A stretch of 62,962 nucleotides of DNA, filler included, from Trichosphaerium sp. ATCC 40318 (lineage: Eukaryota; Protista; Tubulinea): the NCBI GenBank assembly GCA_038496445.1. It is 3 parts of 3 records of this genome, joined end to end, with 100 filler letters (N's around TTAATTAATTAA, not from the genome) between each part and the next. Parts side by side here need not be neighbours in the genome. Positions count along the whole stretch, not along the records: positions 29,811 to 50,439 come from JALMLS010000533.1; 2 more parts are not named here. One strand, given 5' to 3'. The stretch's first letter is position 1. Each line of letters opens with the position of its first letter. Made by a program: the position numbers and the translations under genes. Shown here piece by piece: positions 32,651 to 47,223 of the stretch. Below the pieces are notes generated by a model, which did no database searches, was not told where the DNA came from, and saw only the letters and a program-made list of their open reading frames with translations.

Positions 32651-33226
32651 GTTCTATTGTATATATTCAATGTGGTAATAATTGTATTGCTAACAAAATT
32701 AGTCAAAACGAAAAAAAAGTGACACTTTGACACTTGAGATTCAATTTCGTGGATCTTTTTTTTTTTTGTCAATACATTATTGTGTAATACAGACCATTTG
32801 AATTCCTTTCTATTCCTCTCTTCCTCACAAAAATATGTTATGCTTTATTATTAGTGATAAAAACATTATTTTCATTCGAACTGTAAAGTTCTGTGAGGTG
32901 GAAAAAAAATCTCAATGATTTTTTGAAATTGACTGCCTGTTGGATTTTTTTCTCATATCTTAATTAGGCGTCAACGTGCAATGCAAGAGGCAGGGTTTTT
33001 GCAATCTTCATTTTCTACTGGAGGATCATAAAAATAGACCTAGTCGGCCTGTAATATAATAACTCTATTGCTTCTGTATCTGCTAAATTACGCCATAAGA
33101 GTGAATGTGAGTTTAAAATGCTTCAAATTTATGGTTGTTAAACCAAGATTAAGTGTATCAAACTGTGAACTTTCTGAATTGTTTTTCCCAATACACTTGC
33201 GTTGTTTTGTGACATAGTCAAAAAAA

Positions 33227-33313
33227 TGCAGAGAGTGGGACTCGAACCCACACGTGATTTTCATCACATTGTGTCTTGAACACAACCTCATTAACCAATT
33301 CGAGCACCTCTGC
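33227..33313 (-). tRNA. tRNA-Leu(CAA)
   Basis: Acceptor stem GCAGAGG/TCTCTGC-A, anticodon arm TTGTG-TTCAAGA-CACAA, long variable arm, T-arm GTGGG-TTCGAGT-CCCAC. It is followed directly by a T7 Pol III terminator (33220-33226). Confidence 0.92.
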
Positions 33314-33321
33314 AACGTATG

Positions 33322-33392
33322 TGGGACAACCAGGAATCGAACCTGAACTGCAGCACCTTCAATGCCATGTGCTTCCGTTACACCATTGTCCC
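33322..33392 (-). tRNA. tRNA with GAA anticodon (nominally Phe), atypical body
   Basis: GGGACAA TG GTGT AACGGAA GCAC A TGGCA TTGAAGG TGCTG CAGT TCAGG TTCGATT CCTGG TTGTCCC A. This is a complete 71-nt cloverleaf with a 4-nt variable loop. Confidence 0.8.
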
Positions 33393-42519: not shown

Positions 42520-45500
42520 ATGGCAATGGAAATAGACACTTTCGAGAGCCTAGCAGGTGAGCCAGAGCAAATTCATCCCCCAGATGCTGTTTTCTACTGG
42601 GAGGACTCAAAACCAACTGGAGCGATTGGCTGGGTTGTGTTGGATCGCGTTATAAACAGAGTAGCAGGAGGAGGCATCTTTATGCATCCAAACGCAACGG
42701 AACAGGTGCGATACGTTGACTGTACCTCGTATGCGCTTTAAGCGCTTCATTGGTGTAAAAACTCCATACTGCACCAAAACGTTGGTGACCTAGCAATTTG
42801 CGTGCCATTCACATGCACACATGCACCAACGCCTAACGAAGTAGTATTATTATTTAACGAATCTGAAAACGCTAATCAAAATCGTGCAACTCAACTCTAA
42901 AACGCCATAGGAAGTAGCAGATATTGCTCGTAACATGTCTAGAAAGTTTACAGTATGCGATCCGCAAATCGGTGGCGCTAAAGCTGGTACGTATTATAAA
43001 AAACGTCAAGATACGTTTTTAATAGCGTAGAGCCGTTATTTTTTATCTCAAAGTGTCAAAATCTTTCATGTTAATTCTGTAAGTGGTAACACGTTAAAAA
43101 ATCGCTTATAAAAACGCACATTGCTGTTTTCGTATTTTTGGTAGCACATTTGGCGTTTCCCTTATGAAAATATGAAACGTCACCTCACCTCACATTGATT
43201 TTAAAGAAAGATAGGTATTCGATTTAATCATCGTGATGCCAGGGCAAAAGAAGTACGTCATTTTACGAGGTTTTACTTTTTTTTTTTCTTCTTTTTTTTT
43301 TTCGAAAGTAGACATTAATTGTCTATTAACAGGTTCTTCGCCGGTTCATTATTGATAATAAGACTCTTTTGAGTAATGTATGGGTTACAGCAGGAGATTT
43401 AAATACAGATGACAGGTTTATAGAACAAGTTATTCAAAATGACTTGGGATTACCAACAATGCAGTATGTGATTTGTAGTAATTCTTTCACAATTTAATTA
43501 CATCAATTGATTTTTTTTTCATTTAGACATGTACTAGCACAGACATTTTCACGCGCTACTGGACAACCAAATCGCGCTGGAAACTTATCCTCTATAATTA
43601 TACATCCAGCATGTAAAGAAAAGTTTTTCCCGCTCATTGAAGTACGATGTTGTATTTATTGTTTTAAAAGTTACCTTGTTATTCTTTTACGTTCTGCGCT
43701 TATGCTAACAACGTTACAAATAGGGTTCTGTAGGCTATGGTATATCAGAAGCTATACGCACAGCGATAACTCTTACAAACCCTGCTGGTCTTGGTACATA
43801 AAAGAACCTTTGTTGTTACACCATTTAACAGTACCTTTTATGGAATAGGTAAATTCCGTGTTATCATTCAAGGTTTTGGTGCTGTTGGTAGTTCGCTTGC
43901 TTATTATTTGGTCCATAGAAATATAGCTAAGGTCGTCGCCTTATGTGACAAGGATGGGTTAGTCTTTGAATAGGAATAGAACATCACCTTGTTACTTTTT
44001 TGCTAACCTTTTTCTCTAAGGTACATTTTTGATCATAATGGTTTAGACATCTATGATGTATTATGTGCACGTCAAGCGTGAGTTTAAATACAAAACAACA
44101 TGTATCATTACATGATGCTAATATGTCATTTTTACAGGCGTATACAAAAGCTGATGATGTCTAAAGGTTCTCCAAAACGAATAGCTGAAAGTGCTAAAAA
44201 CTTCTTCTGCAATTTGAGTCCCGCTCAAAAGAAAAAATTTAATGCTGTCACAAGAACACAAAATTTTTCAATTGTCGGTAACGCACAGTTTCTTGCACAG
44301 TTTTTAGCTTGTACAAAGGTAATCATCGAGCAAATCTTAAAATTTTCTTAGTTTTTGTTGACATTCTTTGTGCTTGCAGGCAGAAGTTTTTAGTCCCTGT
44401 GCATTGCGTTATCAAGTGAGTAACGATATTGTACAATCTATGATACACACAACATGGAGAGACGTCAAAGACAGGTAATAAGTTCGGTAGTCAAAGCATT
44501 GCTAACATGGTTGTAGATATCTCGTATGTGGAGCAAACAATCCTTATGGTACTGTCACATCAGCTGGTGCATTGGTGGGCGACGATTCTGGATCAGTACA
44601 GTGTGTACGTCAAAATGAAAAGCTTTTAACAACGTAGGTTGTACATCTGTTAATATTTATCTTAGACACTCCGTGATGCTAATGTATGTATTGTTCCTGA
44701 TTGGGTTGCAAATTCTGGAACTGCTCAGCTATTTCATCGTGCTATTTCACTTAACTTTAACATAAATGTACGCCTCCTTTATTTCCTTAATTCCCTGTTA
44801 CTAGCCTATGTAAACTACACGTTTTCAAACCAATTGTTTGGACGCTTACTGATATTTAATAATAGTATCCAAACCTTGCTGAGGAAGTACTAGAGGCTGT
44901 TGGAAACCCAATCAAGTAAGTTTTCTCTTTTTTTTCATTTTTATCAAATTCAAGTTGGTATCATTACTAACTCGTTTGGTATGTAGGACGTATATAGAAA
45001 AGTCTTACGCTCTCGTTGACAAAAAAAAACGGTTTTTAGAATATGGTTGCTGCAAAAGAGCTCTTGAGGTACATTACTTAGATTCGAGATAGTCCTCTTC
45101 GTGTTGATGTTTTTTTTTGACTTTACGTAGTTGCTTGATAAACCCGTATCTCTCTTTGAGAGCTTCAAGAATGTTACAAATCCTGCAAACTCTAGATATT
45201 CTTTGCCGCCACCGTACTCTACACTCACTGTCGATGACAGATTAAATAGATGTACACGATGGGCTGTCGAGTGCAGTGGTGTAGAAGAGTTTAAAGAACT
45301 ACTTCGTATTAGTAGAAATCCTGTTGCACTTGATGGTTGCGAACCTAGTGGGCGTATGACAATAGCACAGGTACAATAGATGATATTCAAATACTTGAAT
45401 GCAGTCACATCTGTTCTCAACGTGTTTTAACCTGTGTTGTTTTTTTAGATACTTACAAAGAAGTATATGGTTCAATTGCTTACGTCCTCTGGTTTTACAT

Positions 45501-47223
45501 ATTTATTTTTAATAGCCGATTGGTTCGCATATATGAATCATAAGGTAGGTGTACGATAGCAAAAAAAATAGTAACCCAAGGATCCCACTATAACCCAAAC
45601 AACTTTGTTTGATATTTTTTAAGTGAAAAATGGTTGACTTTTAGTTCGTTTTGGAGTTCGGTTGCTCACTGTTTTCTTTGTTAGTTGGGTGGAGATAAAT
45701 CAAAGATTAAGATTGTTGGACAATATTTTATTGAAGTTTTTAAAGCATCTGGACTAGATTTATCACGTGTTCAATTCTTATGGGCATCAGAAGAACAAAA
45801 AAAATATGCTGATAAATATTGGTCACAAGTCATTGATATTTCAACAAAGTACTTTTACAATCTATCTTCCTTGAGATTTCTGATTTTGTGCCTTCACCAC
45901 CATTCCTTACTTCTTATTAGATTCAATTTGGCTGATGTCAAAGACTGTTCTGTCATTATGGGAAGAGAACCAACGGATGAGTTATCTGCTTCTATGGCAA
46001 TGTATACTTGTATGCAAGCAGCAGATGCCTTATTTCTAGGCGCTGATGTATGTCAAATGGGAACAGATCAAACAAAAGTTATAAACATGGCTAGAGCATA
46101 CTGTGATAAGTCAGGAGGACAGTACAGAAAACCTATTGTACTAGCAAACCCAATTATAAGGTACGACTGACTTCAAAAAAAAAAACACCAGCACAGCTTT
46201 ATTTTCTTCAAGTTGCAGCGAATACAGCTCTATTCGTTCAAATTCTTCGCTTGTTCTGGGCGTTTTACCTTTTTTTTTAACTTGATCCTTTTTTTCCCTC
46301 TTCAAACATCATGTGTATCACTCCTTGTTAGCCGCTCTTTATCCTTGTAAATCAAGAAAAAAAAGCCACGTGATAGTCTAATAGTTTTTGTTTTGTAGTG
46401 ACCTGTATGGCAAGAGTAAGATGAGTAAAAGTAAAGCTGATGCAGCTATATTCGTTGATGATACACCCGCTGTTGTTAAGCAAAAAGTCATGAACGCTTA
46501 TTGCCCTGAGAAACAAGTACGGGTTTTGTCATTTTTTTTTACTTTTTTCAAAAGTCGGTCAGTTGCTCAAGTGTTTGTATAGGTAGTAGGAAATCCTTGT
46601 GCAGAAATGATGCAATATCTTGTGATTCCTAATGTACAAACAAGAAATGGCAACATCATAAACCTTCCAGTCGTTTTCGATACACAAAATGGAAAGAGAA
46701 TAGAAATTAGAGCAGTACAAGATTTCACTAAAGCTTACAGTGTACGTTTTCTTTTATAAAAAACCAACTATTATGTACTCTACACTACCGATGGATATAT
46801 ATTGCGGCCCCGTAACCATTCGGAGTGAAAATTATGGGACCTAGTACTAGCGACTGTCCTTTTTGTTTTGTTTTTTTTTACAAACTTATTTTTCTTTTAG
46901 GAAGGCTTTATCACTGCTTCAGACTTGAGACGAAATTTAATTCGTGAAATTAACAGATTACTTGAACCTATTAGAACACATTTTGCTACTGACGAAACAG
47001 CCAGAGAACTTCTTCTACAGGTACTAAAAAAAACCAAAACTTGGCAAAAAACAATCAACAAAAAACAGCTTTTTTTTCCATCTCTACGGGATGTCTCTTG
47101 TTTTTTGTATTTTCTGTAGTTTAAAACCTTTATATTAAACGTATGATATAGGTGCAATCATTTTCTGGGAGTCAAAATAAGACTGAAGCTCAAAATGGAG
47201 CTCCAAACGGATTGTACCACTAA
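42520..47223 (+). CDS. Fusion protein: Glu/Leu/Phe/Val amino-acid dehydrogenase plus a divergent tyrosyl-tRNA synthetase (~870 aa, ~22 exons)
   Basis: Dehydrogenase motifs AGGG, MSRKF, IGGAKAG, AGDLNT, QGFGAVG, SPCA, GANNP and VPDWVANSG. These run through GT-AG splices, with no stop codon, into TyrRS motifs DGCEPSGRMTIAQ, IADWFAYMNHKLGGD, FLWASE, IMGR, YTCMQAAD, CQMGTDQ, KMSKS and AYCP..GNPC. Stop TAA at 47221-47223. Confidence 0.88.

Follow-up and report, generated by a model that had tools for sequence, protein, structure and literature searches.

A fusion of a dehydrogenase-like domain and a divergent, possibly repurposed tyrosyl-tRNA synthetase in the amoeba Trichosphaerium

A window of 62,962 nucleotides (the whole stretch of DNA that was analysed, filler included) from the genome assembly of Trichosphaerium sp. 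ATCC 40318 (GCA_038496445.1) contains a gene that fuses an N-terminal domain resembling the Glu/Leu/Phe/Val (ELFV) dehydrogenases to a C-terminal tyrosyl-tRNA synthetase (TyrRS). This fusion gene is transcribed, spliced and under purifying selection. Its TyrRS half has replaced residues that are nearly invariant in its family, in the pocket that holds the tyrosine ring, at the first position of the HIGH signature and at positions expected to read the acceptor stem of tRNATyr, while the KMSKS motif and the residues expected to hold ATP and the amino acid backbone are kept. We tentatively favour, at a little under an even chance, the reading that the domain has been repurposed but remains an active synthetase, its ring pocket wider and more hydrophobic and its readout of the acceptor stem altered.

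The region has about 37% G+C and the character of eukaryotic DNA with short introns. A manual gene model on the plus strand (Table 1) comprises 22 exons encoding 859 amino acids without internal stops, and all 21 introns are GT-AG introns of 42 to 238 nucleotides. Expression was assessed with contigs from four public runs, belonging to four studies, that were placed on the gene; spliced contigs from X1, X2, X3 and X5 reproduce 13 of the 21 introns as exact GT..AG joints. An exhaustive protein search also recovered P0001, a 294-amino-acid peptide from the MMETSP0405 transcriptome of Trichosphaerium sp. ATCC 40318 (Amoebozoa), which is identical to the last 294 amino acids of the spliced model, from MNHK to the stop, and does not include the exon carrying the pocket motif ALDGCEPSGRMTIAQ. 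For the part of the gene around that exon, a spliced contig of 1105 nucleotides from run X1 spans positions 45261-45368 with zero differences from the window, and a contig from run X3 crosses the junction 45370/45449, with 41 letters on its upstream side, again with zero differences. The codons of Leu524, Cys527 and Thr534 are identical in the X1 and X3 contigs. All of the motifs quoted in the original prediction, which was made from the sequence alone, are present in frame in this one spliced gene; the 16-residue stretch on which it centred (ALDGCEPSGRMTIAQ plus Ile538) spans an intron.

Selection was judged from synonymous and nonsynonymous differences between the window and the contigs of the runs; at about 50% identity, the sole near relative is so distant that synonymous sites are saturated. 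All 24 differences between window and contigs are synonymous changes at third positions (16 in the dehydrogenase-like part, 8 in the linker and TyrRS part) and none is nonsynonymous, so the fusion gene is not a pseudogene. No Trichosphaerium contig from the four runs was seen to bridge the exon 14/15 junction (45068/45131). The frame is continuous across these two exons, and P0153, a transcript of the sister lineage, spans the homologous junction. One polypeptide thus carries N-terminal ELFV_dehydrog_N/ELFV_dehydrog domains and a C-terminal tRNA-synt_1b domain.

The PF00579 profile, which detects the Rossmann-fold catalytic domain of class Ic TyrRSs, matches two exons of the C-terminal half with scores over the gathering threshold (E = 1e-10 and 1e-6), and the solved structures that best match a two-exon query are the TyrRSs of Plasmodium falciparum (3vgj, E = 3e-31), other apicomplexans and Leishmania. 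The domain belongs to the same fold family as the cytosolic TyrRSs of plants, alveolates and kinetoplastids (P. falciparum 3VGJ), and it nests among them in the tree. Enzymes of the plant/alveolate type carry the motif set xYDGFEPSGRMHIAQG, ADWF, YPCMQCAD, QLGMDQRKVN and KMSKS, and the same set can be followed through the Trichosphaerium domain. In contrast to these enzymes, Trichosphaerium has Leu524, Cys527, Thr534, Leu558, Asp629, Asp632, Ala660, Thr675 and Ile678, and its protein adds the dehydrogenase-like domain of 457 amino acids at the N-terminus.

Residue states were counted by column in an alignment of 335 TyrRS domains, taken from all proteins fetched, with about 300-335 residues per column. 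At column 524, Tyr is found in 291 of 302 domains and Leu in Trichosphaerium; at column 527, Phe (299/302) is replaced by Cys; and at column 534, the first His of HIGH (296/309) is replaced by Thr, giving the motif TIAQ. The family consensus given in the original prediction is therefore right, and the altered motifs YTCMQAADAL and QMGTDQTKVI, as well as the KMSKS motif, the ADW motif and the Asp of YxxMQxxD that it had listed as retained, were all confirmed. The Trp of column 558 (272/327) is Leu in Trichosphaerium and is kept in P0153, while at column 660, where 317 of 335 domains have Ile or Val and only 8 have Ala, Trichosphaerium has Ala. Arg at column 675 (288/335) is replaced by Thr, or by Ile in P0153, and Asn at column 678 (317/335) by Ile. 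Two basic positions have reversed their charge: column 629 (Arg, 298/335) is Asp in both Trichosphaerium and P0153, and column 632 (Arg or Lys, 298/335) is Asp in Trichosphaerium. The stretch LSHHML of the family (Ser 297/332, His 302/332, Met 296/333) reads LANPII, with Asn for the His of column 700 (302/332). Among the residues that match the family, the Asp of the ADW motif (Asp561) is found in all 327 domains and that of column 659 in 331 of 335; KMSKS, PSG, Tyr652, Gln656, Asp673, Gln674 and Lys676 are kept as well. The changes at the equivalents of M. jannaschii Leu65, Ile159, Arg174 and Arg132, and a widespread family of fusions with canonical motifs elsewhere, add to what had been predicted.

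Several of these positions have counterparts of known function in other TyrRSs. Leu558 and Ala660 fall at what we take to be the columns of M. jannaschii Leu65 and Ile159, and position 632, anchored on the conserved IMGR motif, probably corresponds to M. jannaschii Arg132 and yeast Arg151. By alignment, Leu524 is the equivalent of M. jannaschii Tyr32 and yeast Tyr43, and Thr675 replaces the Arg equivalent to M. jannaschii Arg174 and yeast Arg193. In yeast TyrRS, the ring hydroxyl of tyrosine is hydrogen-bonded by Tyr43 and Asp177 (PMC1934993), whose equivalents in M. jannaschii are Tyr32 and Asp158; in Trichosphaerium this pair is reduced to the Asp, Asp659, with Leu524 in place of the Tyr. 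The amino group is held in yeast by Tyr170, Gln174 and Gln192, in a mode conserved in the three domains of life (PMC1934993), and the corresponding Tyr652, Gln656 and Gln674 are present in Trichosphaerium with the same spacing as in yeast (Tyr-x3-Gln-x2-Asp-x14-Gln); the 15-residue step from Asp to Gln agrees with both the yeast and the M. jannaschii numbering (PMC1934993). The pocket of the M. jannaschii enzyme is lined by Tyr32, Leu65, Phe108, Asp158 and Leu162, and changes at Tyr32 and Asp158 let in larger substrates (PMC9499402). In yeast Y43G and in variants of E. coli TyrRS, a smaller residue in place of the hydroxyl-binding Tyr lets a substituent fit at ring position 3 (PMC1934993).

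Recognition of the tRNA may be affected as well. The strongest identity elements of tRNATyr are C1-G72 and A73; C1 is read directly by Arg174 in M. jannaschii and by Arg193 in yeast, which also reads A73, while in M. jannaschii Arg132 reaches C1 via a water molecule and Lys175 reads G72, which in yeast is read by Arg151, the counterpart of Arg132 (PMC1934993). In Trichosphaerium, Thr675 and Asp632 stand where these Arg residues would be expected, and Lys676, the equivalent of Lys175, is kept.

The combination of Leu, Cys and Thr with an intact KMSKS motif occurs in no other domain sampled. Residues other than Tyr at column 524 are found elsewhere almost only in the N-terminal halves of the double-length TyrRSs of grasses, which have lost KMSKS too. 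Natural variants of the class I signature also occur in the family: the single-domain TyrRSs P0020, P0393 and P0042 have TFAQ or NIAN where HIAQ is usual, with KMSKS intact.

The fusion is not peculiar to Trichosphaerium. A search with the relative P0008 found about 45 fusion clusters that carry PF02812, PF00208 and PF00579, originating from JGI, ENA, Logan and unannotated NCBI assemblies, with a UniRef or nr source in none of them. The family appears to be undescribed, and a literature search for an ELFV-dehydrogenase-like::TyrRS fusion or for Trichosphaerium synthetases found no description. Nearly all relatives read (A/C)YDGFEPSGRMHIAQG, that is, they keep AYDGFEPSGRMHIAQG, and about 40 have canonical motifs in the fused TyrRS, which the JGI annotation names as such. 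The diverged members are Trichosphaerium, its sister P0153 and a few on long branches (P0133, P0183 and P0184). No other member shares Leu, Cys and Thr at the three positions, and P0153 keeps Tyr, Phe and His. Many of the fusions (P0008 and P0154-P0185, with loci L001-L004 for two of them) are single uninterrupted open reading frames (ORFs) on metagenome or assembly contigs.

Divergence in Trichosphaerium is confined to one of the two domains. Across the columns that are at least 90% conserved in an alignment of 41 fusion proteins with Trichosphaerium and its sister, the dehydrogenase-like domain departs at 4 of 107, all of them conservatively, and the TyrRS domain at 16 of 92 (17%), against 0-5 in most members. 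Among 42 proteins, Trichosphaerium has the highest ratio of TyrRS distance to dehydrogenase distance. In maximum-likelihood trees both domains group with those of the other fusions. The fusion TyrRS domains form one group (Shimodaira-Hasegawa-like approximate likelihood ratio test, SH-aLRT, 93) in which Trichosphaerium pairs with its sister P0153 (support 99); the stem measures 0.74 and the Trichosphaerium tip 0.99, where the median tip is 0.59. In the tree of dehydrogenase-like domains its sister is P0171 (support 97), and its tip of 0.46 is under the median of 0.59. From the branch lengths of the two trees, the TyrRS half has therefore evolved about 3 times faster than its partner domain.

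P0153, a EukProt transcript about 50% identical to the Trichosphaerium protein, bears on the timing of this acceleration; P0004/P0153 are the closest orthologues, at about 50% identity, among the matches listed in searches with P0153 and P0001. P0153 shares nine other departures from conserved columns with Trichosphaerium and has changes of its own, HIAQ to HIAT and GNPC to KNGL. The acceleration of the TyrRS half began before the two lineages split, and the independent drift of motifs in P0153 fits a housekeeping role lost in their common ancestor. In the long-branch members P0133, P0183 and P0184, 11-17 of the 92 conserved TyrRS columns are changed (for example to YNGFENSG) beside ordinary dehydrogenase-like domains, and release of the TyrRS half may have been recurrent among fusion lineages. 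P0186-P0193 are stand-alone homologues of the dehydrogenase-like domain, of about 460 amino acids, that nest among the fusions in the tree; on this placement either the fusion arose or disappeared on more than one occasion, or partial gene calls are among these sequences.

The dehydrogenase-like domain of Trichosphaerium matches solved glutamate dehydrogenases weakly (E ~1e-13). When it is aligned through P0008 to the glutamate dehydrogenase structure 4xgi, the catalytic Lys (GGAKAG), the catalytic Asp (AGDLNT), the Lys that binds the alpha-carboxylate (MSRKF) and the GxGxxG motif (GFGAVG) are all in place. The segment AGGGIFMH (GVSGGGIFMH in P0008) aligns to GPGKGGVRYH, with Gly for the Lys and Phe for the following Arg. 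The Lys of GPxKGG in glutamate dehydrogenases binds the gamma-carboxylate of glutamate, and with its replacement the domain is not a strict glutamate dehydrogenase (EC 1.4.1.2-4). It is probably, to go by these residues, an amino-acid dehydrogenase that does not use glutamate; an aromatic 2-oxo acid as its substrate is a speculative idea.

We propose that the TyrRS domain has left the regime of constraint of canonical TyrRSs and would still be a class I adenylate-forming enzyme. The parts that bind ATP and the amino acid backbone would be those that are kept: PSG, TIAQ (in the place of HIGH or TIGN), GxDQ, KMSKS, Tyr652, Gln656 and Gln674. Asp659 would still pair with a ring hydroxyl, whose second ligand would be gone, with Leu524 in place of Tyr. 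Four substitutions (Leu558 for Trp, Ala660 for Ile, Cys527 for Phe and Ile678 for Asn) are predicted to leave the ring pocket with a thinner and more hydrophobic wall, and the readers of C1-G72 and A73 in tRNATyr would have been replaced by Thr675 (from Arg), Asp632 (from Arg or Lys) and Asp629 (from Arg). Such an enzyme would most likely activate an aromatic amino acid similar to tyrosine, its specificity being relaxed or shifted and its pocket leaving room at ring position 3, and housekeeping charging would then fall to another TyrRS. Retention of catalysis, the direction of the shift in specificity and the existence of a second TyrRS are what we infer in this proposal.

An active enzyme is ranked first because its core motifs have been kept over about 1.7 substitutions per site, a distance at which unconstrained residues would mostly be replaced, and because known dead TyrRS modules lose KMSKS. 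The Thr at position 534 need not weaken catalysis, since Thr is normal at the first HIGH position in active bacterial tryptophanyl-tRNA synthetase (TrpRS; TIGN in E. coli, PMC10201369) and is also found in TyrRSs that keep KMSKS. The original prediction had offered Phe or modified or halogenated aromatics as substrates. The retained Asp659, the partner of the phenol hydroxyl, argues against Phe itself and its para-substituted analogues and fits a ring that bears a hydroxyl and has room at position 3, by analogy with yeast Y43G (PMC1934993).

Several points weigh against the proposal of a repurposed synthetase. Neither the hydroxyl-binding Tyr nor the Arg at the position of Arg174 is universal: the TyrRS of Thermus thermophilus has a Lys (Lys41) in place of the Tyr, and bacterial TyrRSs, among them those of B. 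stearothermophilus and E. coli, carry Trp where M. jannaschii has Arg174 (PMC1934993), so that the changes in Trichosphaerium do not prove that use of Tyr or tRNATyr has been lost. A second Trichosphaerium TyrRS is assumed, and no second plant-type TyrRS from MMETSP0405 appeared among 120 listed matches, a search in which one of the human/yeast type would not be detectable. The equivalences with M. jannaschii positions 65, 132 and 159 come from a motif-anchored alignment, guided by the motif spacing in PMC1934993, rather than from an alignment tool; the M. jannaschii enzyme ranks 14th in the PDB search. Finally, the dehydrogenase-like domain has stayed as it was, which speaks against the two domains having switched together to a new amino acid.

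A rather unlikely alternative is that the TyrRS domain no longer aminoacylates and is kept as a pseudo-synthetase that dimerises or scaffolds the dehydrogenase-like domain, or binds tRNA or another ligand. Leu, Phe or Val at the Tyr32 equivalent is known elsewhere almost only from the degenerate halves of double-length plant TyrRSs, and Trichosphaerium in addition lacks the initial His of HIGH and has replaced the basic residue at three positions of acceptor-stem contact, two of them with reversed charge, while the better conserved half of the protein is the dehydrogenase-like one. The same TyrRS subfamily provides precedents in the pseudo-dimers of Leishmania major and Trypanosoma brucei (PMC8319005). 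In these pseudo-dimers, as in the grass N-terminal halves, however, the copy that loses the hydroxyl-binding Tyr and the first His also loses KMSKS, beside an intact copy in the same chain (the dead half in L. major has ARAVL in its place, PMC8319005), whereas Trichosphaerium has a single TyrRS module with KMSKS intact. PSG, GxDQ, Asp561 and all but one of the anchors of the amino group and the hydroxyl have survived the same long branch together with KMSKS, known dead halves lose that motif, and Thr for His is natural and active in TrpRS; a purely structural role would not require catalytic residues to be retained. The choice that the original prediction had left between a re-specified enzyme and a pseudo-synthetase leans, on the intact core motifs and anchors, the synonymous differences and the precedent of TrpRS, towards the active enzyme.

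Still less probable, and in our view unlikely, is that the domain is a working TyrRS, possibly the only cytosolic one, whose changes are tolerated or compensated; Asp659 alone would then hold tyrosine, and Lys676 together with the anticodon-binding domain would read tRNATyr. The fused TyrRS is fully canonical in the roughly 40 relatives, so the fusion was plausibly a housekeeping enzyme ancestrally, and the absence of a second plant-type TyrRS among the 120 matches, the purifying selection, the retained Asp, Tyr, Gln and Gln anchors with KMSKS, and the natural TyrRSs that do without the Tyr or the Arg are all consistent with such a role. It is harder to reconcile with an acceleration of about 3-fold confined to the TyrRS domain, with the loss of residues conserved in 96-99% of some 300 homologues, with several pocket changes and three acceptor-stem changes occurring together, and with a sister that has independently altered HIAQ and GNPC. 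The claim in the original prediction that this is not a housekeeping TyrRS accordingly gains indirect support, from the contrast of 16/92 and 4/107 departures, the drift in P0153 and the replaced equivalents of the C1-reading Arg residues, and stops short of proof.

A more specific possibility, which we regard as improbable, is that evolution has turned the synthetase to a non-canonical aromatic amino acid such as 3,4-dihydroxyphenylalanine (DOPA) or a halotyrosine, to be used on a dedicated tRNA or non-ribosomally, beside a dehydrogenase that does not act on glutamate. Tyrosines substituted at ring position 3 might be met in the diet of an alga-grazing marine amoeba. Mis-assembly, sequencing error or an untranscribed, decaying pseudogene, which only the unusual residues themselves would favour, is far less credible than any of these and is ruled out by the spliced contigs and the uniformly synonymous differences (24 against 0), with a frame intact over 22 exons, identical motif codons in spliced transcripts of four runs, and only 17% of the conserved TyrRS columns changed.

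Other fusions, such as P0008, P0171 and P0155, have the same architecture as the Trichosphaerium protein, whose dehydrogenase-like domain has the consensus residue at 103 of 107 conserved columns. Parallels to its TyrRS pocket are found in engineered enzymes, namely the M. jannaschii libraries at Tyr32, Leu65, Asp158, Ile159 and Leu162, yeast Y43G and E. coli Y37V/Q195C, which are altered at the same positions. They share with Trichosphaerium the direction of change, towards smaller or hydrophobic residues at the equivalents of Tyr32 and Ile159 and in the Leu65 column. The Trichosphaerium change is, by contrast, natural; it keeps the equivalent of Asp158, which most variants for para-substituents change, and it extends to the readers of the acceptor stem. 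Bacterial TrpRS offers a Thr as the first residue of the class I signature in an active class Ic enzyme, in a different synthetase and with TIGN where TIAQ stands here.

In the textbook view, TyrRS owes its specificity to the Tyr/Asp pair at the phenol hydroxyl, and replacing the Tyr is an established engineering route to non-canonical amino acids. If the proposed reading is true, a natural enzyme with an altered pocket and an intact core, held under purifying selection, would show that evolution can re-tune a synthetase in this way, and it would offer a new scaffold for expansion of the genetic code. Across the fusion family, the dehydrogenase-like domain might supply substrate to the synthetase, sense that substrate or regulate charging. 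Should the TyrRS domain of Trichosphaerium instead turn out to be an inactive scaffold, it would join the degenerate halves of the double-length TyrRSs of trypanosomatids and plants as another non-catalytic module derived from TyrRS.

Table 1. Positions of the fusion gene and its motifs, counted along the whole window
Feature	Position	Strand	Remarks
Whole fusion gene, ELFV-dehydrogenase-like::TyrRS	42520..47223	+	Gene model, contigs, P0001
Glu/Leu/Phe/Val-dehydrogenase-like domain	42520..45068	+	Exons 1-14, amino acids 1-457; PF00208 match on one exon
GGGIFMH	42667-42687	+	Dehydrogenase-like domain
GGAKAG, catalytic-Lys motif	starts 42971	+	Dehydrogenase-like domain
TAGDLNTD	43387-43410	+	Dehydrogenase-like domain
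GFGAVG, dinucleotide-binding motif	near 43872-43889	+	Dehydrogenase-like domain
Linker, TyrRS catalytic and C-terminal domains	45131..47223	+	Exons 15-22, amino acids 458-859; PF00579
ALDGCEPSGRMTIAQ	45326..45370	+	Pocket/HIGH motif; carries Leu524, Cys527, Thr534
Leu524 (CTT)	45329-31	+	Codon
Cys527 (TGC)	45338-40	+	Codon
Thr534 (ACA)	45359-61	+	Codon
Ile538	45449-45451	+	First residue past the 78-nucleotide GT-AG intron after ALDGCEPSGRMTIAQ
LFLIADWF (ADW motif)	45503..45526	+	Leu558 for family Trp; Asp kept
Asp629, Asp632 in FNLADVKDC	45936..45947	+	Basic positions in the family
YTCMQAADALFL	46003..46038	+	Contains YTCMQAADAL; Tyr652, Gln656, Asp659 kept; Ala660
QMGTDQTKVI	46054..46083	+	Asp673, Gln674, Lys676 kept; Thr675, Ile678 changed
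LANPII (family LSHHML)	46141..46158	+	Family frequencies
KMSKS	46418..46432	+	Intact; TyrRS domain
GNPC motif	46589..46600	+	C-terminal domain; kept, KNGL in sister P0153

The 5' splice sites of the fusion gene are biased strongly to GTAC or GTAA and its introns end mostly in TAG; a TACTAAC box like that of yeast is found at 44966-44972, ahead of the 3' splice site at 44986. Run X2 contains contigs that differ by 3-6% from the window at 43869-43983, 44146-44316 and 45145-45300, at synonymous third positions only, along with contigs 99% identical to the window. The divergent contigs suggest that the fusion gene has a second allele, a paralogue or a strain copy, likewise under purifying selection. 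A minus-strand ORF of 156 amino acids at 44950-45420 was read as spurious, as it overlaps coding exons of the plus strand, and the ORFs neighbouring the fusion gene gave no informative Pfam matches. Elsewhere in the window, genes for tRNA-Leu(CAA), at 33226-33314, and tRNA-Phe(GAA), at 33321-33392, lie on the minus strand with 6 nucleotides between them, and the pair may be dicistronic.

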